Assembly: GCA_002269645.1 (NCBI GenBank)
Contig: NIVC01003803.1
Span: 12,146 to 76,145 of the forward strand
Source of the DNA: Macrostomum lignano
Lineage: Eukaryota
DNA length: 64,000 nucleotides
Reading direction: 5' to 3'
Every line of letters starts with the position of its first letter. Position 1 is the stretch's first letter. Shown here in pieces: positions 9,344 through 64,000 of this stretch. The position numbers were made by a program, and so were the translations under genes. Below the pieces are notes generated by a model, which worked only from the letters and a program-made list of their open reading frames with translations, was not told the DNA's origin and searched no databases.

Positions 9344-9346
9344 GCC

Positions 9347-30543: not shown

Positions 30544-30659
30544 TTTTATGCAATATTTAAAAAAATATATATTTAATTTAAAACATCCACTGAAAAAAGT
30601 TTTGTGACAATAAGTCAATAGTGATTCAAAAGGCAAAGTAGTTTTGCACTTGAATAGGC

Positions 30660-30898
30660 GGTGTAGGACCAAGACCGCCACACACCAAGACCACCACACT
30701 TGGGGAGCTAAGGGAGAAATTTGAATTTATGTGTTATTAGATAGTGCTAGAGAGGAGATGAGTGGGTAGGAGAGCCAGCAGTGAGAAAAGAACCTATGAG
30801 AGGAATAGCACTGCTAGAAGATTGGTAGCTCCCCCTCAATACCAGTAGCCAGTAATAGCTGTGGTGGTCTTGGTGTGTGGCAGTCTTAGTCATGCGCC
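30660..30898. mobile_element. MITE, 239 bp, with ~45-bp TIRs and an 8-bp TSD
   Basis: GGTGTAGGACCAAGACCGCCACACACCAAGACCACCACA / inverse at 30859-30898; TSD GAATAGGC at 30652 and 30899. Confidence 0.85.
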
Positions 30899-32625
30899 GA
30901 ATAGGCCTATGAATGATCATGAGCATTATTTATGATCCCTAGCCTCATCCCAATTCTATGATGATAACACATTTGCTGTCTTGTTGCAAGGTTTATAACT
31001 TAACTTTGAATTTTATGTTTAGGCCTATGTATAGTCAAGTCAATGTTTTTTGGGTTGTAAAATAATATGTTTAGATATACTTGTACTTTTAAAAAATGAG
31101 TTTATCTTTACTTTTAAAGTATTTTTAAGATATATAGTCCAGATATTTTGTTTAGACTGACATTATATTTGATATTTTGTTGACAAACAAAATGACTGCA
31201 TCATATTTTTGTAGACAAAAGTGGCAAACAAACTAATAGCAGACAAAATAACTTTCAACTAGTAATAGTAGGCTAATAGCAATCTGGGAAATCAGCTCAA
31301 GTACCTGCAAGTCATCAATAAGAAAAAAAGAATAAAAAAGCTAATAAAATTTTTAAAAATGACATAGGCCCCTAATGATAGTGGGCATCAATAAAAGTAA
31401 GTTGAGCCAAGGTAAGGTATAGTATAGGCCTAGCAAAAAAGTTAGGGGCATACTTAGTCTTAGGTAGGCTGCATAGCCTAAAGGTAGATAGGCCTAATAA
31501 AAAAAATTAAAATAGGCCCCCTATTATAACTCACTAAAATTAATTGCCCATCTCCATAGGCCTAGCATAGGCATAGGCCTAGGGAGCCTAGCCTAGGTAG
31601 GTCTAGTCATCTAGGGTTGGCTAGGCTAGGCCTTAACCTACATCACCTACTCTATGTAAATCTAAGGAGAATGTCTACTTTTTAAGTTTGGGCCCAAATT
31701 TTTTATGAACTTGCATACAGAAGCACGTGCAAATAAGTCAGTCAGTTCATGAAAAACTAAGCAAAGCAACGCTAGGGTCGACCTCACTTGGCACTTTAAA
31801 CCTGAGAATGCTAGGCTACAGTCGTGATCTGGGTTAGACAGACACAGGCAGACTTCAAACTTCACTTTTCAAAGGTGACACAGCAAAACTTATAGCCTTC
31901 AATCAATTACGAAAAATTTGGGCAATCATTGGTCACAAAAGCAAATTGGCGCCGGCGGGAAAACAAAAATAAGGGAATAAAAATAGTTCGTTTACACTAT
32001 TGTCGTCTTGAAAATAGCTTTTTAAACAAAACAGACAGTTTAAAAAACTTTTAAAACGTCCTAAAATGCATGCTATGTTTCTCATTGTGAAAAAGGTATA
32101 AAGAAAAATCTAGATGAATTATCTTATATTGTATTTACAAAATTTAAAACTGGCAATCGAACTTTCATATTTATGATGACAACGTTCGACGCGTTCATAA
32201 ATTAATTGATATGATTGCTTTCTTGTTTTGCTGGGATTATGATTAAATGAGAAATGCTGCTCAAGCAAGCCTTGTCACTGTTTTCCTGCAATCTAATTAA
32301 TAATCTGACTATCCTTTTCTTTCTTTTCTGAATTTCACTTGACTAGCGCGATAGCGCAGCGCCTAGGGCTAGGGTAGGCCTAGTTAGGCCTATAGTAGGG
32401 GTCTAGCATCTCACTCTCACTGCATCTGTCGATTTATGTGAATCTGTACCTTTTTGACTCTTTAACTAGACTTGCTGTTATACACGTTAGGCCCTAGGCC
32501 TACTTAGATTAAATATTATGGCTAGGGGGGCTATCCTGCAGAATTGTTTGTTAAACTCACTGTATGCATATTTTTTAGCTATTGACATGAAGCTTGCAAA
32601 AAATGAATATTTTCATTATGCCAAC

Positions 32626-35610: not shown

Positions 35611-35877
35611 GTCACCATGCAGCTGTGCGACACCAGACTGTTCAATCTGGCTTACGCCTCGTCGCCAGCCGGTCAAGACGATACCGGCGTTGCCGCCTTC
35701 AAAGAAAAATTTAATCTGTTCACGCAGAAAGAGCTGGCTGACTCGCTGATGGGCAGCTCGGACGATTTGGGCAGCGCCGCAATCTCCGTTATTGGCTGCG
35801 TCGGCTGCAGACGCGCTGTTGAAGCCTTCCTGGGCCATGTTGGAGAGACTGGGGAGCCGGCGCTGGACCCCGTGCAG
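35611..35877 (+). CDS. GGNBP2: GGNBP2 exon 2
   Basis: IGCVGCRRAVEAFL...GEPALDPV; cattcag| and CAG|GTTAGT. Confidence 0.9.
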
Positions 35878-35883
35878 GTTAGT

Positions 35884-36860
35884 ATTGGGATCGGGATTTG
35901 AGGTAGCTGGGATCGGGATCTGAGTAGCTGGGATCGGGATCTGGGTAGCTGGGATCGGGATCTGGGTAGCTGGGATCGGGATCTGGGTAGCTGGGATCGG
36001 GATCTGGGTAGTTGAGATCGGGATCTGGGTAGCTGGGATCGGGATCTGGATAGTTGAGATCGGGATCTGGGTAGCTGGGATCGGGATCTGGGTAGTTGAG
36101 ATCGGGATCTGGGTAGCTGGGATCGGGATCTGGATAGTTGGGATTGGGATTGGATTTGAGGTTGTTGGGATCGGGATCTGGGTAGCTGGGATTGGGCTCT
36201 GGGTAGCTGGGATCGGGCTCTGGGTAGCTAAGATAGGGATCTGGGTAGCTGAGTTCGGGATCTGGGTAGCTGTGATCTGGGTTTTTTTGGGCCATTTAGG
36301 GTTTTTTGGATCCCTGAAAACCTCATTGGCAAATGGATTTTTGGCATCAGAGGCCAATCTCGCAACTTCATTTTCCCAATGCCAGTTGCCAATTTCAAAA
36401 ATTGACAATTTCAATAACAAGTCCCAGACAGTCTCATTCCCCTCAATTATACAGTGCATACACGTTTAATGAGCCTTGGAAATATTCATCCTCAAGAATT
36501 TGGCTAGTTGCCAATGAGCAACCAAAAATAGCCATTGGCAACTGGATTTTGAGCCCCAAGGGCACGCTGTTGCCCCCCAGGCTGTGATCGGGATCTGGGT
36601 AGCTGGGATCGGGATCTGGGTAGCTGGGATCGGGATCTGGGTAGCTGGGATCGGGATCTGGGTAGCTGGGATCGGGATCTGGGTAGCTGGGATCGGGATC
36701 TGGGTAGTTGAGATCGGGATCTGGGTAGCTGGGATCGGGATCTGGATAGTTGGGATTGGGATTGGATTTGAGGTTGTTGGGATCGGGATCTGGGTAGCTG
36801 GCTCGGGGATTATGGTAGTTGGGATTGGGATCAGGAATGTGTGGTTGTCGGGATCAGGAT
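35884..36860 (+). repeat. 21-bp minisatellite (TGGGATCGGGATCTGGGTAGC) split by a 304-bp insertion
   Basis: Arrays at 35884-36276 and 36581-36860. Confidence 0.95.
36277..36580. mobile_element. Small insertion element with an 8-bp TSD inside the minisatellite
   Basis: The variant GCTGTGAT occurs only at the two flanks (36269, 36581); CTGGG...CCCAG ends. Confidence 0.7.
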
Positions 36861-36981
36861 CTTTGATCTGAATATCTGTAGTTGTGATGTGGCTAATTAG
36901 TAGGGATCTTTGTAATAGGAATTCGGGACCGGAAGCATGAGTTCCAGACTTTAACTTTAATTTTTGTTAAAAATTCTGCAG

Positions 36982-37475
36982 CTCCGCGGAAAGACGATCA
37001 GCCTTCACAGCGACTGGTTCGCCTCGGCCACCCGACTTCACTACCTACTTGAAGTAGTTCGCCGCGTACTAGAATGCCGAGTTACTGCCGGCGGCAAGGC
37101 AAAGAAAGGCCGCAGATGCGCTATGCACGGCTTGGACGCGCACAAAACGGGCAGGACCAGCTGGAAGGAGCTGTGGGATGTCATGACAACGGAATGCCGT
37201 GCCGAGCTAGGCCTGGTGTCATTCGAGTCGCTGGAAGACACCCTGGACGCTCATCTTGTCAGGCATAAATTCTGTCGCGAGTGTCGGGCCAAAGTTGAAC
37301 GCGCATTCGCCATGATGATTGGCGACGAGGCGCCCGATAACACCTATAAGCCTGCGGTGTTCGCCTTTGTTCGCGTGTGCAAGGAGCGCGGGCATTTGCA
37401 CCTGCTGCCGGACAAAACCGCCACCGACACGCTGTACGAATTGGTGGATAGGGCCGAGCCCGAGCTGCTGCAGAG
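36982..37475 (+). CDS. GGNBP2: GGNBP2 exon 3
   Basis: RCAMHGLDAHK, WKELWDVMTTECR, HKFCRECRAKV, RAEPE; AG|GTGAGT. Confidence 0.92.
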
Positions 37476-37486
37476 GTGAGTAATCA

Positions 37487-38210
37487 GGTGTCTTTTGTTG
37501 TGTCTCATAGTCTGTTCGAATGTGTCTTTTGTTGTGTCTCATAGTCTGTTCGAATGTGTCTTTTGTTGTGTCTCATAGTCTGTTCAGATGTGTCTTGTTG
37601 TGTCTCATAGTCTGTTCAGATGTGTCTTGTTGTGTCTCATAGTCTGTTCAGATGTGTCTATTGTTGTGTCTCATAGTCTGTTCAGATGTGTCTTGTTGTG
37701 TCTCATAGTCTGTTCAGATGTGTCTTGTTGTGTCTCATAGTCTGTTCAGATGTGTCTATTGTTGTGTCTCATAGTCTGTTCAGATGTGTCTTGTTGTGTC
37801 TCATAGTCTGTTCAGATGTGTCTTGTTGTGTCTCATAGTCTGTTCAGATGTGTCTATTGTTGTGTCTCATAGTCTGTTCAGATGTGTCTTGTTGTGTCTC
37901 ATAGTCTGTTCAGATGTGTCTTGTTGTGTCTCATAGTCTGTTCAGATGTGTCTTGTTGTGTCTCATAGTCTGTTCAGATGTGTCTATTGTTGTGTCTCAT
38001 AGTCTGTTCAGATGTGTCTTGTTGTGTCTCATAGTCTGTTCAGATGTGTCTTGTTGTGTCTCATAGTCTGTTCAGATGTGTCTTGTTGTGTCTCATAGTC
38101 TGTTCAGATGTGTCTTGTTGTGTCTCATAGTCTGTTCAGATGTGTCTTGTTGTGTCTCATAGTCTGTTCAGATGTGTCTTGTTGTGTCTCATAGTCTGTT
38201 CAGATGTCTT
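37487..38210 (+). repeat. 32/34-bp minisatellite (GTGTCTTGTTGTGTCTCATAGTCTGTTCAGAT), GGNBP2 intron 3
   Basis: About 22 units. Confidence 0.96.
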
Positions 38211-38738
38211 TTACGCTCGTAGTGTGTCCTTCCTTAGTCTTTTCACAGGTGTCTTTTGTTGTGTCTCATAGTCTGTTTAGATGTGTCTCTTGGTGTGTCC
38301 GTTAGTCTGGTCAGATGCGCCTTTTAGTTTGTCTATTAGGCCTTTCAGATGTGTCTTAAGGTGTGTCCATTGATCTTCTAACATGTCTCTGTATATCTGT
38401 TATTACATTCAGCTCTTTTTGAGTGAAGTGTGCCTTCACGTAAATGTGTTTATTAAACTTTGGCCTTGGTTACAGCTATTGTTGCATTCATGAGTCTTGG
38501 GTGGTGGGTGGTGCTGTGTCTGGCTGTGTCCGCCCAATTATCTTTAAGCATGTCTTCAGTTGTGTCCATTAGTCACCATGTGTGTCTGTTGTTCTTTTTA
38601 TGTGTCTCTGGGCATGTCAATATCTCTATTCAACAAGGGCAAGCGTAACCATATCAGGCCTCTATTCCAGAGCCTGCGAATTCCCTTTGACCTTATTACC
38701 TACTGATGTGCCGCTCAATGTAGCTCCAACAATTGCAG

Positions 38739-39117
38739 CAATCCGCGCGAACGCCATGCGCAAACAATGGACGCGGCGCAAGAAGAAGTGCTCACCTGCA
38801 TCGGATTGCACCTGTACAACCGGCTGACTCACCTGGCTCACACGCTCCGGTCAGATGAACAGACCTGGCTGCTGTCTCTGCTGCTTTGCCTTGAACAGCT
38901 CCGCCAGGGTTTGGAATCAGCCGTAGAAAAGAAGCGCGGCTACTCCTCTTTGGACCTGTTCTACTGGCAGCTGGAGCGCGAGGAGAAGGTGGCCGAGCAG
39001 CGGCGCGAAGCTAAACGAGAGAAGCGTCGCCAGAAACGGCAGAATAAACGGGCAGCGGTTGGCAACGGCGCCACTGATGGAGACGGGGCCGACACTGCTA
39101 CTGACTCTGTTGTGACG
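38739..39117 (+). CDS. GGNBP2: GGNBP2 exon 4
   Basis: RERHAQTMDAAQEEVLTCIGLHLYNRL...EKRRQKR; phase fits exon 3; donor ACG|GTAGTT. Confidence 0.9.
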
Positions 39118-39159
39118 GTAGTTACTGTTGCACTTGATGCTTTGACCTCCCAGACCATA

Positions 39160-39685
39160 TTTGTAGCTGGTGCCCCTCTGTAGCTGGTGCCCCTCTGTAG
39201 CTGGTGCCCCTCTGTAGCTGGCGCCCCTCTGTAGCTGGTGCCCCTCTGTAGCTGGTGCCCCTCTGTAGCTGGCGCCCCTCTGTAGCTGGTGCCCCTCTGT
39301 AGCTGGTGCCCCTCTGTAGCTGGTGCCCCTCTGTAGCTGGCGCCCTTCTGTAGCTGGCGCCTCCTCTGTAGCTGGCGCCTCCTCTGTAGCTGGTGCCCCT
39401 CTGTAGCTGTCGCATCTTTGTAGCTAGCGCCCCCTCTATCTAGCGGCCCCCTGTAGCTGGCGCCATTCTCTGTAGCTAGCGGCCCCTGTAGCTGGCGCCA
39501 TTCTCTGTAGTTAGCGTCCCCTCTGTAGCTGGCGCCATTCTCTGTAGCTAGCGGCCCCCTGTAGCTGGCGCCATTCTCTGTAGTTAGCGTCCCCTCTGTA
39601 GCTGGCGCCCCTCTGTAGCTGGCGCCCCCTCTGTAGCTAGCGGCCCCCTGTAGCTGGCGCCATTCTCTGTAGTTAGCGTCCTAGC
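39160..39685 (+). repeat. 17-bp minisatellite (GTAGCTGGTGCCCCTCT), GGNBP2 intron 4
   Basis: Direct reading. Confidence 0.95.
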
Positions 39686-39836: not shown

Positions 39837-39898
39837 GTAAACGGCTGGAGTAACTATAGTAGTATTTTAGCATAAAATTCCTCGTCATCTAATTACAG
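39837..39898 (+). repeat. 28S rRNA-derived fragment, copy C, ending at the GGNBP2 exon-5 acceptor
   Basis: GTAAACGGCTGGAGTAACTAT-N17-AAATTCCTCGTCATCTAATTACAG. Confidence 0.8.
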
Positions 39899-43580: not shown

Positions 43581-44067
43581 TATACTATTGAGGCACGCAT
43601 GAGCGCACGAGTGCCATAGAATTTTATCACAAGGCATCACAGAACCAGAATCTGTGCGCGGTGTAACACCTACAGTTTGGCGGCCTGCGATCTTAGGCTG
43701 TATTATCACCTAGGCGATAGAGTGACTATATATCGTTCTTACCCCGAATAATCTGAAATTAACAGATAATATATTGATATGGTCTCTGCAACAGCATATA
43801 CCGTATGTGAACGAGTAATTCATACACTGCCATAGCCAGTTTTTAAATAAGACGATGTGCACGGACGCAGAACGTAATTTACAGTAATACGTTATTTACT
43901 AGTACTGTAAGTAATGCTTTCGCTATAGCTAAGTAGATGTATGAATTGCAGTAAATATACCATTATTAAAGTTAAATAAAATTAACAGACAGAGCTCTAG
44001 CCCAAAGGCCAAATCTGAAGAAGGAACATATTCTTTGGATTCAATAATCTGGTACTGAACGGAGGAG

Positions 44068-44490
44068 CGGAGAGACAGATTAAGGGGCTGAGGGAGGAGC
44101 AGAGGAGCGGAGAGGCAGATTCAGGGACTGAGGGAGGAGCGGAGAGGCAGATTCAGGGGCTGATGGAGGGGCGGAGAGGCAGATTCAGGGGCTGATGGAG
44201 GAGCGGAGGAGCGGAGAGGCAGATTCAGGGGCTGAAGGAGGAGCGGAGAGGCAGATTCAGGGACTGAGGGAGGAGCGGAGAGGCAGATTCAGGGGCTGAG
44301 GGAGGAGCGGAGAGGCAGATTCAGGGGCTGAGGGAGGAGCGGAGAGGCAGATTCAGGGACTGAGGGAGGAGCGGAGAGGCAGATTCAGGGACTGAGGGAG
44401 GAGCGGAGAGGCAGATTCAGGGACTGAGGGAGGAGCGGAGAGGCAGATTCAGGGGCTGAGGGAGGAGCGGAGAGGCAGACTCAGGGACTG
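44068..44490 (+). repeat. 32-bp minisatellite (GAGCGGAGAGGCAGATTCAGGGGCTGAGGGAG)
   Basis: About 13 units; inverted copy at 46045-46265. Confidence 0.95.
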
Positions 44491-45029
44491 AGGGACGGGT
44501 TCAAATAAAAGTGCAAAAAAAGAAAACCAAATGACACAATTGACGACAATCTTAGCTTGAGGCATTGAGCAGCTATCTGATGCGTTTGTATCAAGTTAAA
44601 CAAATGTATTAATGAGTGGCGCGCAGAGCCGGTGGGTGTGCATCGCAGATGTGTCGAATACGCGACAGTAATATTAGTGAAGAGATTGGTTGTACTTTTA
44701 CAGGGCACAAACTGCTGCACACAATTTGAGAAAGCAAAGAAGAGTAATTAGCATTTTAAAAAAGAAGAAACACACCGCAAAGTGAGCAGACTGCTATAGG
44801 GGTAATTTGAATCATCATAGCAAAGCAAATATTTGTGTGGTGGTTTTGATCGCGAGGAATACTGCAAGAGCGTGGCGGCGTGGGAGCCAAATCCCAGACA
44901 GCATAGAAATCCGATAAAAAATAAGCAAAATAGTAAAAAGCAGTAACTTCAGCTGACTGGACACCAGCTCTGAAGATATTTTCTACACAGTAAACTGGCT
45001 TTTCAACATCAGACAGTTCTATCAAAACC

Positions 45030-45490
45030 AACTGATGCACTCAAGTGGGGCTTAATCTGAACTGCTAATCCCACTGATGCACTCAAGTGGGGCTTAATCT
45101 GAACTGCTAATCCCACTGATGCACTCAAGTGGGGATTACTCTGAACTGCTAATCCCACTGATGCACTCAAGTGGGGCTTAATCTGAACTGCTAATCCCAC
45201 TGATGCACTCAAGTGGGGATTAATCTGAACTGCTAATCCCACTGATGCACTCAAGTGGGGATTAATCTGAACTGCTAATCCCACTGATGCACTCAAGTGG
45301 GGATTACTCTGAACTGCTAATCCCACTGATGCACTCAAGTGGGGATTACTCTGAACTGCTAATCCCACTGATGCACTCAAGTGGAGATTAATCTGAACTG
45401 CTAATCCCACTGATGCACTCAAGTGGGGATTACTCTGAACTGCTAATCCCACTGATGTACTCAGGGGGGTTAACATAACCTGCTAATCCT
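45030..45490 (+). repeat. 42-bp minisatellite (CCACTGATGCACTCAAGTGGGGATTAATCTGAACTGCTAATC)
   Basis: About 11 units. Confidence 0.95.
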
Positions 45491-46044
45491 AGCACGGAAA
45501 CTCCATGGCTCAGTAACCAGTTATGTTTCCATATGTTTCCACTTTTTTTTAAAATCAGAATGCTTATAGTGTATGTGTGGCTTAGTTATAACACGTATAG
45601 ACATTGCGTCACCCATGTACAATTATATATGCAGAAGCATTTGTAATATTTAAAAAAGGTCACAAATAGACAAAAAGTTGAAATTCTGTCATAAAACACG
45701 TTATCCACGAACACAAGAGTAACGGGAAACAACACAGCCAGTTTGTTTATACTAGAGTTATTGTTTTTTATCAGTTTAAATAAATAATTATTAGTATTGC
45801 TACTAAGCTTAGAACAGTATCTTAACTTTGCTTTCACAAATCTATAAAACAAATAAAAAGCAACAGATTTCATGGACTAAGCTTAGAAACTCGACGAAAA
45901 CAAACAGTAAAAGAGGAGTTCAAGCAAAACATTTTTATTTGCCTTTAGTTGCTAACGCAACAGAAAACACAAACTTAAAGACAAATGGGTCAAGAAGTTC
46001 TGAAATCTTTATTTTAGACAGCTCAGTTCTCAAATCTGCCTTCT

Positions 46045-47870: not shown

Positions 47871-47934
47871 CTGAAGGTGAAAGAAAGACTTGATGAGCTC
47901 AGTGCTATGAACCTTTGTTTGTGGGATTCTAATA

Positions 47935-48455
47935 TATTGGCTTTGATGTGCCACTTTAATCAATTTGCTTGGATGTGCCTCTTTAAATTTGCTTTGATGT
48001 GCCGCTTTAATCTACTGGCTTTGATATGCCGCTTTTATAAATTTGCTTTGATGTGCCGCTTTAATCTACTGGCTTTGATATGCCGCTTTTATAAATTTGC
48101 TTTGATGTGCCGCTTTAATCAATTGGCTTTGGTGTGCCGCTTTTATCTACTGGCTTTGGTGTGCCGCTTTTATCTACTGGCTTTGGTGTGCCGCTTTTAT
48201 CTACTGGCTTTGTTGTGCCGCTTTTATCTACTGGCTTTGATGTGCCGCTTTCATCTACTGGCTTTGGTGTGCCGCTTTTATCTACTGGCTTTGGTGTGCC
48301 GCTTTTATCTACTGGCTTTGGTGTGCCGCTTTTATCTACTGGCTTTGTTGTGCCGCTTTTATCTACTGGCTTTGATGTGCCGCTTTCATCTACTGGCTTT
48401 GATGTGCCGCTTTTATCTACTGGCTTTGATGTGCCGCTTTAATCCACTGGCTTAG
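47935..48455 (+). repeat. 27-bp minisatellite (GATGTGCCGCTTTTATCTACTGGCTTT), DCN1 intron 2
   Basis: About 19 units. Confidence 0.95.
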
Positions 48456-48545
48456 ATGTGCCGCATATTACACACGGTAACCATAGCAACATAACATGGC
48501 TTCACCCGGCAACCATAGCAACAAGCATCAATCCAATTCACTCAC

Positions 48546-48915: not shown

Positions 48916-49051
48916 CTGAAAATATTTAGGTGGCGAGGCATTTTAGGTACTAAAAAGAGGTATAGTTACTCTAGCCGTCTACCTACGCTGTTAATTAGGT
49001 GACGAGGCATTTTCATTAGGAAAGAGAGGTAGAGGTACTCCGGCTGTTTAC
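48916..49051 (-). repeat. Two tandem 28S rRNA-derived fragments (copy D 49051-48988, copy E 48982-48916) in DCN1 intron 1
   Basis: Minus strand: GTAAACAGCCGGAGTACCTCT..AAATGCCTCGTCACCTAATTAACAG and GTAGACGGCTAGAGTAACTAT..AAATGCCTCGCCACCTAAATATTTTCAG. Confidence 0.8.
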
Positions 49052-49063
49052 CCAACTACTTGC

Positions 49064-52116: not shown

Positions 52117-52146
52117 CCATAGAGCCATATATATTAAATATATTAC

Positions 52147-52914
52147 TGTGACAGGCCTTTTGGCTCTGTCTTTCTAAACTTCTAACTATTAGTGTTTATT
52201 AAATATCCTACGAGCTGCCACCAAAGTTGTTACAGGCCTTTCACCTCTTACTTTATTAATTTTAATCCCACCGATTTGCCAACTACAGTTATCCTGATTA
52301 TACTTGCTTTTACTCCCTAACTATTTCTTAGAATTTCATTTAAATATTTCTGGGTAGCGTTCTTAGTAGCGTTTCTGGTAGCGTTCTTAGTAGCGTTTCT
52401 GGTAGCTTATGGCTTGCTTTCTGGTAGCGTTCTAGTAGCTTATGGCCTGAGCGGTCTAGTACTGGTATATGTATTAGTGTATAGTCCTAATCGGGCGTTC
52501 ACCAAGACTAGAGGGTCACGGCGCCTCTCTTGGTATATCTCCAAGAATTAGTCCCAATTCCCTTCTCTTAGCAAATTTCTTAGAATCGTTTCACAGGTTT
52601 TGCAAATAAATAAGTCGCTATTTAGCTCAAAGACTTTGAAATGGTTTAGATTGAACTGCTTATTCTGTTCGCAATTATTTGCTCACGAGTAAAAGACAGT
52701 TGGAGTATATTTGTCGCAAAACCGCTCCTATATATAGTGATTTTCCCCACATACGATTAAAACAAAAAAATAATTCTCCAATTTATTTCGCGCATTAAAA
52801 CAAACTATTATTTGGCGTTCGCGTAGATTCAGTTTCTAAGAAAGATTCGAATATACAGTTATTACATTGAAAGAACATTCGAGTATACTATGATAAAGGC
52901 ATAGCACTAGTACA
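52147..52914 (-). repeat. 3' LTR (768 bp)
   Basis: Near-identical to 60053-60818; preceded on the minus strand by PPT AGAGGAGGAAAG (52916-52927). Confidence 0.96.
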
Positions 52915-53200
52915 ACTTTCCTCCTCTATATATCAAATTTTGAACGAAATACTATATTATATGTATACAGTGAAAAATTGATATCGTAGGAAAATGCAGG
53001 TGAAAAGGTGCAAAGCAAGGTGCAGAAAACACAATTCAGTGCTAAAACAATTGGTGCATAAAATGGTTGTGATAGAACTATTATGTAGGTAAACCATTAA
53101 AGTGAGAACTATTATGGAAGCAAAACGAACTATTATAAAAGTATTATAAAAGGCAAAATTGTTATTAAAGGCAACGCAAAAGTTAGTTCACCTCAATAGT

Positions 53201-54076
53201 TCAGATAAACATGCAGGGCTCCGGGAGGTCGCGATAGTAGGGCCAGCCGACTTGAGCGAAAAACCATCGGTACTCTTCGTCGAGGACCGTCAGCGCTGGC
53301 GGCGGGTTGGCTCTTATAGCTCGCTGGAGGCGATAGGCGACGTCCTGGAGAACAGCGACAGCTTCCTGGTAACTGAATTGATCCCTCAGAAACTTCAGGT
53401 GTGTCCAAATTTGCGAGCATTGGGGGTAGCGCTGTCGGCTGTCGGATCGGTGGTACGCTACTTTCAGTGCGTATTGCTCAATGTGGAAGCGTAGCTTTTC
53501 CACCTCTGCTCCGCGAGTCTCCACAAGTTCTCGGACGATGCGATGAAAATCTCTCTGCGAATTCGATTGCTGCTGGCTCGGCTGTAGTGCTGATGGCTGG
53601 CTAGACTGCTGCGCTGATTGCAGGCTCGGCTGCAGCGCTGACTGCTGCGCTGATTGCAGGCTCGGCTGCGACGCTGGCTGCTGAGCTGGCGGTGTCGCAG
53701 CTGTCGATTTCTTCTGCCGTGGTGCCGGGGTCTTTCTCGATGATGGGGCAGCTGGCGGTGACACCAACTGCTGCGTTCGGCTTGATGTCGACGATCCTGG
53801 CGTGGCCTTGACAACATAGGAGCGCACGGGCGCAGCTGCCTGTGCTGCCACCAGGGCGGCGCGCTTCTGCTCGGGGCCTTCGACCCTCATTTGGCGGCAA
53901 GGCGATGAAGCTGGCGATGATGTTCTTGGCCGTTTGCTGGATACACCAGGCGCCTTTGGACGTGTTGCACATCGAAGCGGTGCCTCATTTTCGTCGGTGT
54001 TGGGCGCTGGCTGGGGCTCCATATCGTCTGACAGATTGCCAATTAACTCGTCCAAGATATCAATAGAGTTGTTCAT
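53201..54076 (-). CDS. Orphan third ORF (291 aa) inside the retrotransposon; not env-like
   Basis: caaaATG start; intact frame; GC-rich; no signal peptide or TM segment visible; upstream TATA and GC box. Confidence 0.75.
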   Translation of the reverse strand: MNNSIDILDELIGNLSDDMEPQPAPNTDENEAPLRCATRPKAPGVSSKRPRTSSPASSPCRQMRVEGPEQKRAALVAAQAAAPVRSYVVKATPGSSTSSRTQQLVSPPAAPSSRKTPAPRQKKSTAATPPAQQPASQPSLQSAQQSALQPSLQSAQQSSQPSALQPSQQQSNSQRDFHRIVRELVETRGAEVEKLRFHIEQYALKVAYHRSDSRQRYPQCSQIWTHLKFLRDQFSYQEAVAVLQDVAYRLQRAIRANPPPALTVLDEEYRWFFAQVGWPYYRDLPEPCMFI

Positions 54077-54158
54077 TTTGATTTCTCTGCGAATGGCTCT
54101 TAGAATAGAAAGGAAGCTAGCAGTGAGCTATGGGATCTGTGGGGCCTGCGGGTGCTCG

Positions 54159-54227
54159 TATTTATAGGCTGGCGGGCCGAAAAACTGGACCTCTTCGAAG
54201 CACTCCCCTCGCGCGTGGGGCGGGGCA
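54159..54227 (-). promoter_or_regulatory. Candidate internal Pol II promoter for ORF3
   Basis: GGGGCGGGGC GC box at ~54217-54226 and TATAAATA at 54166-54159, 90 nt upstream of the ATG. Confidence 0.55.
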
Positions 54228-54475
54228 TGCCAGATTTGACAGATTTGACAACTAAATTTTTATGGATTTTCTATTTCTTTTTATAACTTTTTTATTTTTT
54301 GATAGATTTTCTTGAGTAAAGTATCAAATTAAAGATCGCATTTTGTAGATTAATATGGTATTTACAGATTCGCTCTATGTACAGCATGTCAAATTTTATA
54401 AGCAGATAAGTAATTCTAATACGGAATTTTAACTATTTAACACTGTTTCTTATGGGAAATTGCTTACGTCATGAT

Positions 54476-56379
54476 TTAAGGTGCTAAATATTTCGCGTAG
54501 CGCCTTCGGGGCACAAATCCTGTCGCGCCTTCTCTTTCTCTCCTTCGCTGAGTCATCCTAAAGTTATACCTATTCTCTGGCTGAACTCGTTCCTCCTCTA
54601 ACTCTAATGCTCCTTCTTCTTCTTCTGATGGCTCATCTGAGTCAGTCGCTCTCTCTGTATTCTCACTGTTCAATTCTTCATTTCCTTCGTTTTCACTCTG
54701 CGAATTCGGATCTGCGAATACTCTCCATTGAATTCTGTTTTCTTCGTCTGAGCTTTCCTCCTCTAAAATTTGAACTTCTGGAATTCTAACTTCTTTTTGT
54801 CTATGGCAAATTCTTTTATTCGACTTCGGCGGTTCCTTCTTCTTAGTTGACACTGGTGCTGGTTTTAAATTATTATTAATTTCCTCTGGTAAATCAATTT
54901 CGGATTTCGGCACTGGAGTCAGATTATTTCTATGTACTAATAGTTTTTCTCCGCTCCTTTCGCCATTGATTTCTCTTTGCACACGGAACACTGTGTCTGA
55001 TATCTTCGCAAGTACTCGATAGGCTGCTCTCTTCTTTCGATGAAACTTGTGGCTCTCCTCTTGGTGAAGTTGAGGGTTGTTGATGAGAGCGAGACAGCCA
55101 ACTGGCACATTTTTAGGCTGACGATTCTCAACTTCGTCCTCTTGCCTTTTCTCTCGCACCTTTTCGAGTTGTCTTCGCACAATTGCTTTTGTCTCCTCGA
55201 TTCTCTTCGCATGATCCAGCACATAACTAGGATAGTCTCGGTATAGTCTTGGCCTTTTCACAATGCTATCTATTGGCAAATCTGCTTCTCTCCCGAATAG
55301 TAAGTAGTGTGGTGTGAACCCAGTAGTTTGATTAACACTGGTTCGCACAGCTACCAAAGCGGCGGGTATGAGCAGATCCCAATCTGAATGATCCTTTTCA
55401 ATCAAACAGGTTACAATCGATTTAATTTGCTTGTTAAATCTTTCGACAAGCCCGTTACTCTGAGCATGGTAAGGCGTAGTGCAAGTATGCTTAATGCCGT
55501 ATAGGGTACAGAATGCCTGAAATTGGTGACTTACAAAAGTCTTGCCATTATCAGTGTGTATCCATTGACACTGGCCATACTCGCTGAAAATTCTCTCTTG
55601 TATCGTTTTGATAACAGTAGCGGATTTCTGATTCCGAACCGGAAAAGCGAATGGGAACTTTGTTGTACTATCTACACAGTAAGTACATATCGGTGTCCTC
55701 TTCTGCTTTCCTTTGATATTGGACCGATCAAATCTATGTGCAGCCGATGGAATGGCTCACATATCGGAAAGGTCTGCACCGGTGCTCGTACTTTATTTCC
55801 GCTTTTACTTTCCAAACACGGGATGCATTCTACGATGTACTTTTCAACTGCAGTCACTAACCCCGGCCTCCAGAATCGGTCTCGGACTCGCTGTAGCGTC
55901 TTGTCCCGACCTAGGTGGCCTGCTAGCGGACTGTCGTGCAGCTCTTTGAATACATCTTTCTCAATCTTCTCTGGCAATACTACTTTTCGTTTACCGTCTT
56001 CACTGACTGTCAGCATTTCATCTTCGATTTTCATCTGCTCGTAGAGCTTAACCATCTTCTTCAACTCTCCGGATGCATTTTCTGGTAACTTCGGCTCACG
56101 TACTTTCTTCTGCTTCCAGTCCATCAAGGTTCTTATAGAAGGATCAGCATGCTGCGCTGAAGTCAGCTGCTCTTTCTTCAATGGAACCGAGAGGTAATCT
56201 GTCAGAAGCTTTCTGCACACTGTCTCTTCCTCTTCGAAATAGTCTCTTGCATCTTCATAGATGTCATCATCATCTTCGAACTGATCACTGGCATCTTCGT
56301 ATTCATCATCTGCGAATTCGTCTTCGGAATCTGATTCATACTCTTCTGTGAAGTCGGTCTGGCAACTCTGATCTTTCAC
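54476..56379 (-). CDS. pol: Pol segment 3: integrase, interrupted by a frameshift near 55672
   Basis: HDSPLAGH...C..C zinc finger; after a -1 shift, VDSTTK, HTDNG and GLVERFN (DDE); degenerate GPY/F module. Confidence 0.93.
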
Positions 56380-58292
56380 GCTGTAGTCACGACTTGTTTC
56401 ACAGCGCTGGTTTCTATTGTCATCTTAGGAATTTCGGCCTCATTCTCTTTGATCTTAGCATCTTTCTGTTCAACTGGTGGTTCCGAGGGTCGCCGTGACA
56501 ATCCATCTGCGTTGGAATGTTTGGCTCCACTGCGGTGCTCAATATCGTATTGAAACTCACTCAGTCTTTCAATCCATCTTCCGAGAATTCCTTGGGCTTC
56601 GGTCTGGCGCAATAGCCATAGAATTGCCTTGTGGTCTGTGCGGGCCAGAAACCTTTTGCCAATTAGGTAAAATCGGAAGTGTTTCATGCCATCTACTAGC
56701 GCTAATAGCTCTTTTCTGGTAATCGGATATCTTTTCTCAGACTCTTTCATTGCTCTGCTGAAGTAAGCAATGGGTCTTTCAACCCCGTCCGATTGTATTT
56801 GACCCAGGCAAGCACCAATTCGGTCTTCGCTTGCGTCGGTGTCTAACACCATTCGAACATTTTCGTTCTCTGAGAATTCTGGGTACGCGAGTACTTCGGT
56901 CGATGTCATTCTCTGCTTCAACTGCTGGAAAGCCTCGTCATGCTTCTTGGTCCACTTTTCCCTAAAGTTTTGAATACCTTTCTTAGTTAATTGAAATAGC
57001 GGATGCGCTGCCTCTGCGTAATTCTTTACAAATCTGCAGTAGTAGTTACACAACCCCAAGAAGCTTCGCAGTTCTTTGACCTCTTTCGGCGTAGGCCATG
57101 ACTGTATCGCTTCGATCTTAGCTGGGTCTGTTCTAATCCCTTCTCTTCCTACGATATGCCCTAAGTACTTTAGCTCTTTCTGAAACAAGTTGCACTTTTT
57201 TGGTCTTAATTTTAGTCCTGCTGAGATTAGTCTTTGAAATACTTCTTGCAGATGACCGAGATGATCTTCGAATTTCTCTGAGTATGTCACAATATCATCT
57301 ATGTACGACATCGCGAATTTGTGCTGTATTCCCATCAGCACCAAATTCATGAGTCTCTGGAATGTACCAGGAGCGTTAGACAAGCCCTGTGCCATGACCT
57401 GATATTCGAACTGGCCTCTGGTAAGGGTGGAAAAGGCTGTCATAAATTTGTGCTCTTCTTTGATAGGTACCTGCCAGTATCCAGAGTTTAAATCTAGACT
57501 ACTGAAGTACTTGCTTCCAGATAACTGAGCGAAAGTCTCTTGTATGTTCGGCAATGGATATGGGTAATAGTTCACTCTCGAGTTCAGGACCCTGAAGTCA
57601 CTGACGATTCTTATGGATCCATCCTTCTTAGGAACTATCACTAGCGGCGTTGAATAAGTACTATAGCATGGTCGGATCAGGTTCTTAGCAAGCATGTCGT
57701 CAAGTTGCTCATCTACTTGCTTTTGCAGATGTGGTGGAATTCTGCGTGTTGGAATCCTGACCGGTGTGGTATCTTTTAGAGATATTTCATGAGTCACAAG
57801 ATGGGTGAGACCCATGTCTTGGTTGGTCTGCGAAAATGCTTCCTTGTTCTTCTTTAGCAAATCGATCACTAGTCCTTTCTGTTCTGATGTTAGCTCTTCT
57901 CCTAAATCGATCTCGTTTATCCAGCTGTACTCACTCTCTTCACTCTTCACTGTCCTAATTGCATCATCTGAACTGGCTTGACCTTTGCTGTTAATAGAGT
58001 AGGCCAGGCCTCCTGGCTTCAAGGGTTTGGCCACTCCAATCAGCGTAGATCTTGTCAGTCTGATATCGTCATTCTGTCGATTGATTATTTCCACTACTCC
58101 TGTTCCATCGTTCATGGTCACTAGAGTAGGAATCATCTCTAAGGAATTTCTCTTCGTAGTCACTTGGCCTCCAATGGTGTCAATGACCATTGGCGTTCCA
58201 TAGTTAGCTTCTGATCCTTTAGTCATTCTAATTGGAATTCGAAGAGCGCTATTCGCTGGTATAGTCACGCTGTTATGGCTGTAATTCGGCAA
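56376..58292 (-). CDS. pol: Pol segment 2: reverse transcriptase and RNase H
   Basis: LDLNSGYWQV, GLSNAPGTFQ, YIDDI, LDTDAS, ELLA, TDHKAI, ADGLSR. Confidence 0.96.
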   Translation of the reverse strand: MPNYSHNSVTIPANSALRIPIRMTKGSEANYGTPMVIDTIGGQVTTKRNSLEMIPTLVTMNDGTGVVEIINRQNDDIRLTRSTLIGVAKPLKPGGLAYSINSKGQASSDDAIRTVKSEESEYSWINEIDLGEELTSEQKGLVIDLLKKNKEAFSQTNQDMGLTHLVTHEISLKDTTPVRIPTRRIPPHLQKQVDEQLDDMLAKNLIRPCYSTYSTPLVIVPKKDGSIRIVSDFRVLNSRVNYYPYPLPNIQETFAQLSGSKYFSSLDLNSGYWQVPIKEEHKFMTAFSTLTRGQFEYQVMAQGLSNAPGTFQRLMNLVLMGIQHKFAMSYIDDIVTYSEKFEDHLGHLQEVFQRLISAGLKLRPKKCNLFQKELKYLGHIVGREGIRTDPAKIEAIQSWPTPKEVKELRSFLGLCNYYCRFVKNYAEAAHPLFQLTKKGIQNFREKWTKKHDEAFQQLKQRMTSTEVLAYPEFSENENVRMVLDTDASEDRIGACLGQIQSDGVERPIAYFSRAMKESEKRYPITRKELLALVDGMKHFRFYLIGKRFLARTDHKAILWLLRQTEAQGILGRWIERLSEFQYDIEHRSGAKHSNADGLSRRPSEPPVEQKDAKIKENEAEIPKMTIETSAVKQVVTTA

Positions 58293-59055
58293 ACCCGTAC
58301 GGGTAATTTTGTAAACTGAATTGGGATGCAGGTCCTTCTTTTAATACAAGCATTCCTCTGGAAAGGCTGATGCTGTCGCAGAAGTTCATGAAGAACTCCA
58401 TCCCGAGTATGTCGTCACACTCGTGATTGCACAGCAGGAACTCTGTCTCAATCTCTATCTCTCCGAATCGTATTTTCGTTCTGACTTCTCCTTCAATTCG
58501 CACACTTGATCCGTCAAACGTAGTCACTCTTCTAGTAGTCAACTCAATTTCATCACTTCTGAACATCTTTTTCCAAGTACTCTTGCTTAGGAAATTATGT
58601 CCAGCTCCTGTGTCTAGCAGGAAGTAGACCTTTCGGTTTCTTAGCATTCCATTGACGACTGCTTCTCGTCCTTTTCTCTCCGTATCTTCTTCGAATTCTT
58701 TCTTCGAATGCTCATTCGGAATTACTGTACTTTGTACTTTATTATTCGGCCTACTGTGGCTGGCAGACGCATGACTAGGTGCAAGCGGCGTATGTACACG
58801 AGGTGCAAAATTTTTATTTGGTTTTCTGTGAAATTTATTGAATTCGGCATGCGTTCTGCTGTTACTATACTGTCTGGCATTACTTCGATACGCATTATTT
58901 ACAAATTCAGAGGCCTGAAATTCGCGATAATTGTTGCTAGAGGGACGTGGCCTCGCAAAGCGGCCCTCGCTACTCAGTTTCCCTGCTGCTTCTGGTAGTT
59001 CACACTCGCTGACCGTTTGGCCTAGCGCTCTGGCAATTCCTCGCCATGTGGCCAA
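58273..59055 (-). CDS. pol: Pol segment 1: aspartic protease
   Basis: FLLDTGAGHNF and DILGMEF motifs. Confidence 0.9.
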   Translation of the reverse strand: MATWRGIARALGQTVSECELPEAAGKLSSEGRFARPRPSSNNYREFQASEFVNNAYRSNARQYSNSRTHAEFNKFHRKPNKNFAPRVHTPLAPSHASASHSRPNNKVQSTVIPNEHSKKEFEEDTERKGREAVVNGMLRNRKVYFLLDTGAGHNFLSKSTWKKMFRSDEIELTTRRVTTFDGSSVRIEGEVRTKIRFGEIEIETEFLLCNHECDDILGMEFFMNFCDSISLSRGMLVLKEGPASQFSLQNYPYGFAELQP

Positions 59056-59953
59056 GCTTCCCGCAATTGTAGCAGGCTCGAGGCTGCTGCTGTTGCTGTG
59101 GCTGCCTGTTGAACTGAGGCTGACCGCGCCATACTGGCTGCTGCTGCTGCTGCTGCTGCGGTCCAGCGACCTGAGCGTACGTTTGATATTGATTCTGCGG
59201 ATGATACTGCTGACGGCTAGCTCTCTTCTCTTCCATCAGCTCCTCAATCGCCTTCTTCTGTTGCTCTAACTCTGCTCTCTGCTTCTTGATGATGTCCTCA
59301 AGCTTCTCCTGATCTGCCTTCTGCTCACTCTCGCCTTCGCCTTTGGCCATTCTCATGTTGACATTCTTGTGAGACATGTTCCACGCAGCCTCCATCCTTC
59401 TTAGCATTCTTCTAGCCTCTTGTAAATTGCCTGGCTGCGCAAAGATTAGCTTCTCACGGGTCTCTGACGGAATTCTGATTCCCTTGATGAATTGCTCAAC
59501 AATTTCTTCTTCCCTTTGCTCAACCGTCATATTCGGAAATGCACGCGATGCCAGCTCGATCAAACAGTCTGCGAAAGTCTCTACAGGCTCATTTCTGCCT
59601 TGCATTCTTCCACGAAACTCCTCTCTGAATTCTGCGGAACTACCGATTCTTCCGAATCGCTCAATCAGTCGCTCTTTGAACTCTTCGTATTCAAGATCCT
59701 CGGGCAGATTTAGGCGCTGTACCGCTGCGAATGCAGTGGACAGGTCCAGATTAGCTAGCAATTCCTGCTTCCTATGTTCCTCATCTATCCCTTCTACTTC
59801 ACAGCGCTGATCGAAGGCTGTTAGCCAGATCCGAATGTCTTGCGTAGGTGTGAATTTCTGAATCTTAACGTGTCTCATCGGCCCTATCTCTAGTCGGTTT
59901 CGCAATTCTTCTGCCAGCATGGCGATGGCGTCATTAGCCTGATTCTGATTCAT
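59000..59953 (-). CDS. gag: Gag with capsid-like domain and a CCHC zinc knuckle
   Basis: CYNCGKLGHMARNC; FRGRMQGRNEPVETFADCLIELASRAFP. Confidence 0.93.
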   Translation of the reverse strand: MNQNQANDAIAMLAEELRNRLEIGPMRHVKIQKFTPTQDIRIWLTAFDQRCEVEGIDEEHRKQELLANLDLSTAFAAVQRLNLPEDLEYEEFKERLIERFGRIGSSAEFREEFRGRMQGRNEPVETFADCLIELASRAFPNMTVEQREEEIVEQFIKGIRIPSETREKLIFAQPGNLQEARRMLRRMEAAWNMSHKNVNMRMAKGEGESEQKADQEKLEDIIKKQRAELEQQKKAIEELMEEKRASRQQYHPQNQYQTYAQVAGPQQQQQQQPVWRGQPQFNRQPQQQQQPRACYNCGKLGHMARNCQSARPNGQRV

Positions 59954-60032
59954 CTTTCTCTACGAAAAACTTTTCAAATTATTCTTCGGAATTCTTCTGA
60001 ATCTAGTTTTGAGAGTTCGCGCCGTTTCTCTA

Positions 60033-60050
60033 ATCCCACCGCTGCCACCA
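60033..60050 (-). promoter_or_regulatory. Primer binding site complementary to the tRNA-Leu 3' end
   Basis: TGGTGGCAGCGGTGGGAT, 2 nt from the LTR; matches the ...AUCCCACCGCUGCCACCA end of tRNA-Leu(AAG/UAG). Confidence 0.9.
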
Positions 60051-60052
60051 GC

Positions 60053-60818
60053 TGTGACAGGCCTTTTGGCTCTGTCTTTCTAAACTTCTAACTATTAGTG
60101 TTTATTAAATATCCTACGAGCTGCCACCAAAGTTGTTACAGGCCTTTCACCTCTTACTTTATCAATTTTAATCCCACCGATTTGCCAACTACAGTTATCC
60201 TGATTATACTTGCTTTTACTCCCTAACTATTTCTTAGAATTTCATTTAAATATTTCTGGGTAGCGTTCTTAGTAGCGTTTCTGGTAGCGTTCTTAGTAGC
60301 GTTTCTGGTAGCTTATGGCTTGCTTTCTGGTAGCGTTCTAGTAGCTTATGGCCTGAGCGGTCTAGTACTGGTATATGTATTAGTGTATAGTCCTAATCGG
60401 GCGTTCACCAGACTAGAGGGTCACGGCGCCTCTCTTGGTATATCTCCAAGAATTAGTCCCAATTCCCTTCTCTTAGCAAATTTCTTAGAATCGTTTCACA
60501 GGTTTTGCAAATAAATAAGTCGCTATTTAGCTCAAAGACTTTGAAATGGTTTAGATTGAACTGCTTATTCTGTTCGCAATTATTTGCTCACGAGTAAAAG
60601 ACAGTTGAGTATATTTGTCGCAAAACCGCTCCTATATATAGTGATTTTCCCCACATACGATTAAAACAAAAAAATAATTCTCCAATTTATTTCGCGCATT
60701 AAAACAAACTATTATTTGGCGTTCGCGTAGATTCAGTTTCTAAGAAAGATTCGAATATACAGTTATTACATTGAAAGAACATTCGAGTATACTATGATAA
60801 AGGCATAGCACTAGTACA
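60053..60818 (-). repeat. 5' LTR (766 bp)
   Basis: By eye, one substitution and two 1-nt indels relative to the 3' LTR. Confidence 0.96.
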
Positions 60819-60983: not shown

Positions 60984-61447
60984 AATGGCTAGAGTTCCGG
61001 CACCGGAACCCATTTTCTAACAGCTACGGATCCGGCAGTGCCATTATAATATAGATGGAACATTATATTTTTCTTTCTACAGGTGGCTGATATTGAGATT
61101 TTGTTCTAGATTAAAATTTAAGACGATATGATAAGATTTAGGATGAGATGCTTCTAATATTCAGACTTCTTAAGATATGTTCATACATGCGCAACCTTGG
61201 GAATCACCCGGCCGTTTCTATTGGCAACACACACATGTAAGTCGCTATTGGCTGAGAGCAGTCACGTGACTACTATTCTGTCCAATAGCGACTTACGTGT
61301 GTGTGTTGCCAATAGAAACGGCCGGGTGAATCCCTAGGTTGCGCCCAAGCATGGATATGTTCTTAGTAGTCTTTATATGCTTCTATATGGCACTGCTGGA
61401 TCCCTAGCTGTTAGAAAATGGGTTCTGGTGCCGGAACTCTAGCCATT
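60984..61447. mobile_element. Palindromic MITE with ~70-bp TIRs and a 155-bp central palindrome
   Basis: AATGGCTAGAGTTCCGGCACC.GAACCCATTTTCTAACAGCTA and its inverse at 61388-61447; inner arms 61189-61344; no TSD resolved. Confidence 0.8.
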
Positions 61448-63179: not shown

Positions 63180-63495
63180 ATGGCTTCAGGCTCTAGCCTT
63201 AAACAGGCTAAAATCAATCACAGAAATAGTCGCATCAATTCTAAAAGCCAGGCTCAAATAACAGCCGATCTTGTTATTGAAGATGACATCGACACTGAAC
63301 TGTCTGTTGCAGCTCTTGGAGGCTCCAGATGGCAGCATCAGCAGCAGCTGGGACAAAAACAGCAGCAGCATCATATAACTTCGTCACATGGCAGAAAACC
63401 GACCGCCCCTGCAGGTAGCAGCAGACTTGGTGCAAGTGGCGATGCAATTCCAGCTTCCTTTGGCAGCAGAATCTCTAACAGGACAGAGACTGAGG
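63180..63495 (+). CDS. Probable coding exon of an unidentified gene continuing past the window end; next exon likely starts at 63953
   Basis: GC-rich open frame after AT-rich DNA; donor-like GAG|GTTCGA; acceptor ttccgccaacag| at 63952; boundaries uncertain. Confidence 0.45.
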
Positions 63496-63510
63496 TTCGA
63501 GCTTTGATCT

Positions 63511-63835
63511 GTGCTGGCGCCTCTGGTGCTGGCGCCTCTGGTGCTGGCGCCTCTGGTGCTGGCGCCTCTGGTGCTGGCGCCTCTGGTGCTGGCGCCTCTG
63601 GTGCTGGCGCCTCTGGTGCTGGCGCCTCTGGTGCTGGCGCCTCTGGTGCTGGCGCCTCTGGTGCTGGCGCCTCTGGTGCTGGCGCCTCTGGTGCTGGCGC
63701 TCTGGTGCTGGCGCCTCTGGTGCTGGCGCCTCTGGTGCTGGCGCCTCTGGTGCTGGCGCCTCTGGTGCTGGCGCCTCTGGTGCTGGCGCCTCTGGTGCTG
63801 GCGCCTCTGGTGCTGGCGCCTCTGGTGCTGGTGCC
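63511..63835 (+). repeat. 15-bp minisatellite (GGCGCCTCTGGTGCT)
   Basis: About 21 units with one 1-nt deletion at ~63700. Confidence 0.97.
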
Positions 63836-64000
63836 CCATTCAAATAAAATGACACCCCAAACACCCAGTAAAACCCAGTAAACACCCTGCCACTCGAGCC
63901 ACTCAGCCTTCTGATACCAAATAACACTTACTTCCACTATTTCCGCCAACAGCTGGACTCTGTGCAATTTCCACCGGTTCGCCGTGGTCAAGCCGGGTCA

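Follow-up and report, generated by a model that had tools for sequence, protein, structure and literature searches.

A short 28S rRNA-like module in Macrostomum lignano, carried in part by a class II MITE

Introduction

Why should short look-alikes of a single conserved segment of 28S rRNA recur in the introns and intergenic DNA of Macrostomum lignano, and by what route did they arrive there? The question is raised by a stretch of 64,000 nucleotides from contig NIVC01003803.1 (referred to below, at its full length, as the window), in which an initial annotation, made from the letters alone, described a family of five motif copies resembling the part of 28S that contains the R2 insertion site and the I-PpoI site. 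That annotation proposed a miniature rRNA-derived retroposon, or R2-related footprints, whose centres had repeatedly been cut by an rDNA-specific endonuclease and mutagenically repaired. No description of this family was found in the literature on Macrostomum introners, R2, MITEs and 28S-like repeats. The analysis reported here indicates that the 28S fragment is a repeat of a fairly ordinary kind, if a curious one, that shows no rDNA nuclease scars, and that at least one of its lineages rides as the central segment of a MITE of 250-300 bp.

Results

The copies and their match to 28S

Fuzzy matching of the window with two 21-nt queries from the 28S segment, one for the left arm (GTAAACGGCGGGAGTAACTAT) and one for the right (AAATGCCTCGTCATCTAATTA), recovered five paired arms, in the same order and orientation each time and at the places where the initial annotation had put them (A to E; Table 1). 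The reference is the near-universal form of this segment, which we take to represent the gene, and from which M. lignano's own 28S may differ. Mismatches to the left query number 2, 0, 1, 4 and 3 in copies A, B, C, D and E, respectively, and mismatches to the right query 3, 5, 1, 1 and 3. When up to three mismatches were allowed, each arm was matched four times in the window, against 0.00 and 0.01 matches expected from dinucleotide-preserving shuffles, and when up to five were allowed no arm matches appeared anywhere in the window beyond the five pairs. At 0-5 mismatches per 21 positions in each arm, the identity of the motif to the conserved helix 68-71 segment of the reference is significant, and the proposed derivation of the family from 28S at the R2/I-PpoI position is upheld by it.

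The 28S-derived module is about 66 bp in length, running from (TT)GGGTAAACGG to CTAATTAG(T); it maps from the 3' strand of helix 68 through the 5' strand of helix 71 and the loop, and is centred on the R2/I-PpoI position, spanning about -36 to +30 around the R2 nick site. Beyond (TT)GGGTAAAC ... CTAATTAG(T) no 28S homology was found on either side, the matches picked out there by eye being at chance level, and the copies display no similarity to one another outside the ~66-nt core. Further conserved probes from 18S, 5.8S and 28S, about 1 kb in all, were compared with ~230 kb of M. lignano DNA and had no look-alikes there; since this 66-nt segment is the only rRNA segment that has them, the family does not reflect a general scatter of rDNA fragments.

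Three of the copies had been noted to share a GGCT, which was taken to suggest amplification from a diverged master copy. GGCT is indeed present in A, C and E, but it does not serve as such a marker: the position takes G, A, T and C across the copies, and the GGC-N-GGAG position is a variable site, uninformative about a master. The expectation that copies would be frequent fared better, with three more independent insertions in roughly 90 kb of additional M. lignano sequence, making a total of eight independent copies in about 150 kb of non-redundant sequence, itself a tiny sample; the TE-rich (retroelement-rich) M. lignano loci L002 and L003, 38 kb in length, contain none.

Table 1. Positions of the copies, their carriers and other repeats (window coordinates unless a locus is named; 'arm-less' denotes copies that have no MITE arms)
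Feature	Position	Strand	Remarks
Copy A, arm-less	3085-3144	+	left arm 3085-3105, centre 3106-3123, right arm 3124-3144
Copy B, 28S-like core within MITE	25800-25848	+	left arm plus GACT 27/27 identical to canonical 28S
Copy C, arm-less	39837-39895	+	followed by CAG, exon from 39899
Copy D, arm-less	48992-49051	-	sense, DCN1-like intron 1
Copy E, arm-less	48923-48982	-	tandem with D, spacer 6-8 nt
Copy F	L009 21298-21359; L008 10618-10679; L007 18932-18994		further 28S-like copy
MITE with copy B near its middle	25669-25921	+	253 bp, TIRs and 8-bp duplication
TIRs of B MITE, 14 bp	25669-25682; 25908-25921		TATACATGCACAAC; GTTGCGCATTTATG
Left target-site duplication of B MITE, 8 bp	25661-25668		AACCATTT
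Right target-site duplication of B MITE, 8 bp	25922-25929		AATCATTT
Empty site for MITE insertion B'	26965-26972		single AATGCCTT in window and L011
Empty site for MITE insertion G	31054-31061		GTTGTAAA in window
Sister MITE, palindromic, lacking 28S-like core	61182-61353	+	172 bp, TIR CATACATGCGCAAC
8-bp duplication of sister MITE	61174-61181; 61354-61361		GATATGTT
Inverted-repeat element, 239 bp	30660-30898		
8-bp duplication of 239-bp element	30652-30659; 30899-30906		GAATAGGC
Inverted repeats, ~400 bp	26031-26452; 30148-30534		70-80% complementary; also in L011
Ty3/Gypsy LTR retrotransposon	52146-60818		
Direct repeats of Ty3/Gypsy element, ~769 bp	52146-52914; 60052-60818		99.6% identical
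ORFs of Ty3/Gypsy element	59953-59000; 59055-58273; 58292-56376; 56379-55672; 55405-54476	-	
Minisatellites	237-557; 1701-2783; 9095-9935; 11378-11796; 17030-18300; 19100-21400; 24038-24445; 35822-36919; 37451-38412; 39111-39395; 44037-45528; 47883-48545; 63446-63895		periods 8-42 nt

Host genes of the copies

The gene context of each copy was established by mapping annotated proteins back onto the window. The protein encoded by the exons that flank D and E is 98% identical to a Macrostomum lignano DCN1-like protein, and the two copies occupy most of intron 1 of that gene (49063-48871, 193 nt, minus strand), in sense, so the mapping confirms the tandem pair that had been placed in the DCN1 intron. 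Copy D begins 12 nt past the annotated GC-AG 5' splice site (GAG/GCAAGT) of this intron, and copy E lies about 50 nt upstream of its 3' splice site. The first bases of D also supply an in-frame GT site (TGG/GTAAAC) 12 nt downstream of the GC site (window 49052-49063), which, if used, would add four residues (ASSW) to the protein.

Copy C, likewise in sense, forms the last 62 nt of an intron of ~770 nt in a GGNBP2-like gene and ends at the 3' splice site. Copy A is antisense within intron 1 of a minus-strand CDS1-like (phosphatidate cytidylyltransferase) gene (~3171-2894, ~278 nt), with about 27 nt between it and the 5' splice site. Symmetrically around the copy lies a weak inverted repeat of 17 nt (13/17 complementary; 3057-3073 and 3152-3168), which is AT-rich and may be due to chance. 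Copy B is intergenic and lies about 0.5 kb upstream of a minus-strand gene of the LIN54/tesmin-like CXC type. The mixed orientation of the intronic copies (A antisense; C, D and E sense) rules out a single role at the level of RNA.

The MITE that carries copy B

The element that surrounds copy B is one of four full-length members that align TIR to TIR, with the TIR consensus CATACATG(C/T)GCAAC at both ends and the 28S-like core at profile positions 125-191 of 296. These members are 253-296 bp in length and contain TGCGACTT sub-repeats in their interior; the only ORFs that overlap the element are two short mechanical ones (82 and 47 aa), with no sign of coding. The MITE arms form a poor palindrome, and stretches of the arms other than the middle vary too. 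Target duplications of 8 bp accompany three independent insertions (B and two others, B' and G) as well as the sister MITE, and in the homeologous locus L011 both copies of the duplication around the B element read AATCATTT. The sister MITE has the same TIR, a different interior and no core, which indicates that the 28S-like core is a module of one subfamily only. Sub-threshold Rfam matches to mir-249 and mir-96 were noted on both strands of that sister element, and are artefacts of its palindrome.

Copies B, B' and G are accordingly members of a non-autonomous class II transposon. The 8-bp duplications and the 14-bp TIRs fit a hAT- or P-like carrier. hAT elements are characterized by an 8-bp duplication with the preference nTnnnnAn and by a YARNG-type start of the TIR; one of the four target duplications fits nTnnnnAn, the other three read nAnnnnTn, and the TIR starts with CATAC. 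No transposase was found in the loci read, and the MITE is presumably mobilised by a transposase acting in trans.

Filled and empty sites in homeologous loci

The M. lignano loci considered here are duplicated (homeologous), and the homeologs of the DCN1-like, CDS1 and GGNBP2-like genes were compared with the window; noncoding divergence between homeologs is 4-8%. In locus L010, insertion B' is a 296-bp MITE with a 28S-like core and AATGCCTT on either side, and insertion G is a 269-bp MITE, also with a 28S-like core, flanked by GTCATAAA and GTCGTAAA; both sites are empty in the window and in L011. These two comparisons of filled with empty sites establish that the MITE moved by cut-and-paste after the homeologs had diverged, its movement postdating the M. 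lignano genome duplication, and the MITE-borne copies were therefore dispersed via DNA transposition and not by retroposition.

The suggestion of a mini retroposon is not supported by these observations, as the only copies with demonstrable mobility sit in a class II MITE that has TIRs, 8-bp duplications and empty sites. Moreover, poly(A) and Pol III boxes are absent from the copies and their flanks, and the copies, whose left boundary is fixed, form no 5' truncation series.

The arm-less copies behaved otherwise in the same comparison. Copies A, C, D and E are found at the same places in all homeologs examined (A in L006, L007 and L009; C in L005/L011 and L010), and being common to the homeologs they predate the split. 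Their matches to the MITE profile cover positions 125-191 only, with neither TIRs nor flanking duplications, and alignment of their flanks with the MITE arms gave z scores of -1.6 to 0.7, versus 21-74 in positive controls.

Copy F and a possible second carrier

A further copy, F, lies at about position 4268 of contig NIVC01003803.1, ~8 kb before the start of the window, and has counterparts in two homeologs; the divergent homeolog, in which an empty site for F was sought, does not contain the region. C-to-T and G-to-A transitions account for almost all of the heavy decay of F, and its centre keeps TCTTA..AAGG. No B-type MITE arms were found around it, even with transition-tolerant scoring; instead, F lies midway in an inverted repeat of 34 nt (74% complementary; arms at 21192-21225 and 21457-21490 of L009), and the unit is bracketed by a direct repeat of ~10 bp, GCTATA(G)CCTA. 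These features suggest, less strongly than the corresponding ones do for the B-type MITE, that the inverted-repeat unit of F is a second and unrelated carrier of the module.

The diverged centre

Well-kept flanks around a scrambled centre had been attributed to every copy. This holds for A, C, D and E, in which the arms are identical to 28S at 150 of 168 positions (89%) versus 26 of 71 in the centre (37%; Fisher p = 3e-16), but not for G and B', which keep a recognisable 28S centre. In gapped alignments to 28S, shuffled sequence scores as well as the centre of A, C or D, and the centre of E is marginal, whereas the MITE-borne centres stay 28S-like with gaps (14/18 in G and 12/18 in B', both above shuffles); the centre of F, at 13/19 with gaps, is above shuffles as well. 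The centre is 17-18 nt long in four copies and 8-18 nt over all of them, copy B having lost ~10 nt there.

Where the MITE-borne centres differ from 28S, they do so by small indels around TTA/AGG/TAG, at the TTAAGG/TAGCC position. Among the MITE copies a block extending from ~60 nt left of the core through GACTGT is near-identical, and a variable stretch follows directly; it begins halfway along the element, at position 136 of 269 in G and 155 of 296 in B'. This halfway point coincides with the 28S R2/I-PpoI cleavage position, and because imprecise repair at the midpoint and cutting by an rDNA nuclease predict changes in the same place, these data do not separate them.

Changes between homeologs at A, C, D and E number 5/210 in the arms, 4/88 in the centres and 79/1171 at other intron positions. 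The centres thus changed no faster than the surrounding intron since the split, which speaks against repeated cutting in place; they are no current hot spot, and the scrambling occurred before the homeologs separated. Change in the arms was about 3-fold lower than elsewhere in the introns (p = 0.012), but this contrast vanishes when the repeat-rich intron of C is left out (4/126 vs 14/291). The right arm of A has taken two substitutions since the split, and the centre of D is 5 nt shorter in the homeologs. Constraint on the arms is weak at most. The 5-14% by which they differ from 28S would be reached by neutral decay within a few times the age of the homeologs, and the arms can be read as simply younger than saturation. 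A signature of templated repair, in which a centre copies a word from its own right arm, was sought, and matches within a copy were no better than those between copies.

Searches for function and for rDNA elements

Rfam searches at the copies, in both gathering and E-value modes, returned no match to rRNA, group I introns, snoRNAs or miRNAs. The consensus RNA fold of the copies (-2.1 kcal/mol, one compensatory pair) reveals no conserved structure, and snoRNA boxes are absent whichever strand of the copies is read; a 7-bp terminal stem seen in C and D was discarded as a candidate, being kept in neither A nor E. The family pattern had 0 hits in JGI metagenome contigs. The intact I-PpoI 15-mer, CTCTCTTAAGGTAGC, is kept in no copy, and no copy matched a group I intron model. 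R2-related footprints, as had been proposed, find no footing in the surroundings of the copies, which are introns or MITE, with no sequence of R2 or of any other element between or beside the arms.

Other repeats in the window

The 239-bp inverted-repeat element (Table 1), present in the window and in L011 and represented by a clean empty site in L010, belongs to a second MITE family that is polymorphic between homeologs. Between the LIN54-like and GGNBP2-like genes, the pair of ~400-bp inverted repeats encloses about 3.7 kb. A young LTR retrotransposon of the Ty3/Gypsy type, whose open frames for gag, protease, RT-RNase H and integrase lie on the minus strand, is missing from the homeologous loci L004 and L005, and its closest database protein is only 51% identical. 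Minisatellites are numerous, mostly within introns of annotated genes; they yield long spurious ORFs, and their lengths differ between homeologs.

Discussion

The account that we favour, with moderate confidence, is that a 66-bp 28S module was captured once and spread by a class II MITE, and that the arm-less copies in short introns are its older relics; the module is best read as passenger DNA rather than as a gene. All copies would then derive from one captured fragment, as their common boundaries and a shared T insertion suggest. This T, between GCC and AAATGCC, is present in all copies other than B, and most copies also have TT before GGG; both are derived only if the 28S of M. lignano is canonical at these positions, as we assume, and does not itself read TTGGG and GCCTAAATGCC. 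The centres of A, C, D and E were probably scrambled before or upon being laid down, rather than by ongoing cutting, and the centre may be a weak point owing to its place at the midpoint of the carrier, where gap repair after excision, or breakage at the centre of a palindrome, could join ends imprecisely; the poor palindrome of the MITE arms and the variation elsewhere in them count against this. As for the arm-less copies, the module may have been captured as filler DNA or cDNA at chromosome breaks, or the carrier arms may have been lost; exons are only 12 nt away from D, 3 nt from C and 27 nt from A, too close for arms to fit in between, so that simple decay of a full MITE is unlikely. We infer a link between A, C, D and E and the MITE from shared boundaries and one shared indel only.

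There are two alternatives to each of which we would give a small but appreciable chance. In the first of these, a discrete ~66-nt 28S-like DNA or cDNA with fixed ends was pasted repeatedly into chromosome breaks, ordinary breaks in introns giving rise to the arm-less copies and gap-repair junctions of internally deleted transposons to the centres of the MITEs. Such a process would explain the missing duplications, the constant ends and the central place of the module in two inverted-repeat elements, and it agrees with several observations: (i) the boundaries are identical in all copies; (ii) the arm-less copies, in both orientations, have neither target duplications nor poly(A); (iii) the same core is central in two unrelated inverted-repeat elements; and (iv) a single rRNA segment is represented. 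Against it, no such RNA or DNA species is known, fresh captures of rRNA should have intact centres, which A, C and D do not, and the shared T insertion points to one diverged copy if the 28S of the species is canonical.

The second treats the motif as a functional bipartite element, in which the two 21-nt arms are selected as binding sites and a spacer of ~17-18 nt is free to vary, the putative binder being an R2-type zinc-finger/Myb domain or C/D snoRNPs that normally act on this part of 28S rDNA or rRNA. The contrast in identity between arms and centre in A, C, D and E, the centre of 17-18 nt in four copies, the lower rate of change in the arms since the split, and the location of all four arm-less copies in introns of conserved genes near splice sites are in keeping with that view. 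The contrast in rate, however, is gone without the intron of C, the right arm of A took its two substitutions in the same interval, and the divergence of the arms is compatible with neutral decay; the spacing is not fixed, given the shortened centre of D in the homeologs, while the mixed orientation excludes a single RNA-level role and neither a conserved fold nor snoRNA boxes are present.

We consider it quite unlikely that, as the initial annotation would have it, an rDNA-specific endonuclease of the R2-protein or I-PpoI type binds the arms and cuts the centre, with error-prone repair until the site is uncuttable. The extent of the segment around the R2 nick site, the clustering of MITE-borne indels at TTA/AGG/TAG together with the deletion of B there, and the retention of TTAAGG in F while its arms decayed are in keeping with such cutting. 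The indel position, however, is also the MITE midpoint, the centres of A, C and D have kept their length and look random instead of being deleted, and the centres show no excess of change since the homeologs parted. In none of the loci read was an R2, group I intron or endonuclease gene found, and M. lignano is unlisted in a recent R2 catalogue of 300 species, which is an absence of report only; in addition, the model offers no mechanism of dispersal. Were it true, the copies would constitute a natural record of the off-target activity of an rDNA-specific element.

A related proposal, to which we assign a still slimmer chance, is that a protein specific to the rDNA site, either R2-type or a domesticated relative, continues to recognise the dispersed look-alikes, so that the arms persist and the centre is scrambled. 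In that event the MITEs would be seeding introns with decoys, or off-target sites, for an rDNA-specific element, and a three-way interplay between host, DNA transposon and rDNA retrotransposon would follow. Finally, an introner, that is, a mobile intron whose own GT...AG (G/GTAAAC ... CTAAT..AG/) creates introns on landing, is hardly credible: every copy read in sense starts with GT and has an AG within 7 nt after it, C ends exactly at a 3' splice site and D starts at an in-frame alternative 5' site, but the idea was dropped after protein mapping had revealed the mixed orientation of the copies and the annotated splice sites, with A antisense to its host intron, C only the last part of a far longer one, the annotated GC 5' site of the D/E intron upstream of and outside the element, B intergenic within a MITE, and the GT and AG already present in 28S.

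The preferred reading, a module captured once and carried by a MITE, explains the rRNA-like matches in M. lignano introns and intergenic DNA, and bears on repeat annotation, on the filtering of rRNA from RNA-seq data and on rDNA-targeted integration tools tested in M. lignano. The presence of the same 66 bp at the centre of two kinds of inverted-repeat element, and in bare form near splice sites, could also inform the question of how MITE interiors are formed and how breaks are repaired.

Comparison with known systems

The few transposable elements that bear rRNA-gene modules are joined here by a DNA-transposon case with a fragment of 28S coding sequence. A close parallel is offered by Pokey, a piggyBac-family element of Daphnia that inserts at the TTAA of CTCTTAAGG in 28S (PMC3849761, PMC10946416). 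Pokey and mPok likewise combine a class II element with MITEs that have an rDNA-derived interior and are tied to the same 28S region. Pokey, however, carries repeats derived from the IGS and no 28S coding sequence, generates TTAA duplications and sits in rDNA, whereas the M. lignano MITE has the 28S piece inside the element, 8-bp duplications, and genic and intergenic insertions.

Dispersed repeats with rRNA-gene modules also include SINE28, the 5S-derived SINEs and Cassandra TRIMs (PMC10946416). These are retroelements, in which the 5S module acts as Pol III promoter, while SINE28 draws on the 3' end of 28S; the M. lignano family, in contrast, has a DNA-transposon carrier and a helix 68-71 segment, with no evident function for the module. 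Some R2 families have 28S-like sequence in their 3' UTR (PMC5035012), and loss of R2 target specificity is on record in trematodes. The M. lignano module resembles R2 targets in being centred on the R2 cleavage position and in covering roughly the stretch contacted by the R2 protein, but its copies are outside rDNA, have no R2 adjoining them, and are either enclosed in a TIR element or on their own.

Dispersed rRNA pseudogene fragments are known as LSU-rRNA repeats (PMC5381670). They too are non-functional, rDNA-derived DNA outside rDNA arrays, but represent all parts of the rDNA unit with random ends, whereas in M. lignano one 66-bp segment recurs with fixed ends. Abortive gap repair leaves filler DNA at the junctions of internal deletions in hAT, P and Mutator elements. 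Such filler resembles the present case in that it would bring foreign sequence into a transposon's middle and make that middle the most variable part; it is normally unique to each deletion, however, whereas the M. lignano module recurs in two inverted-repeat elements and by itself.
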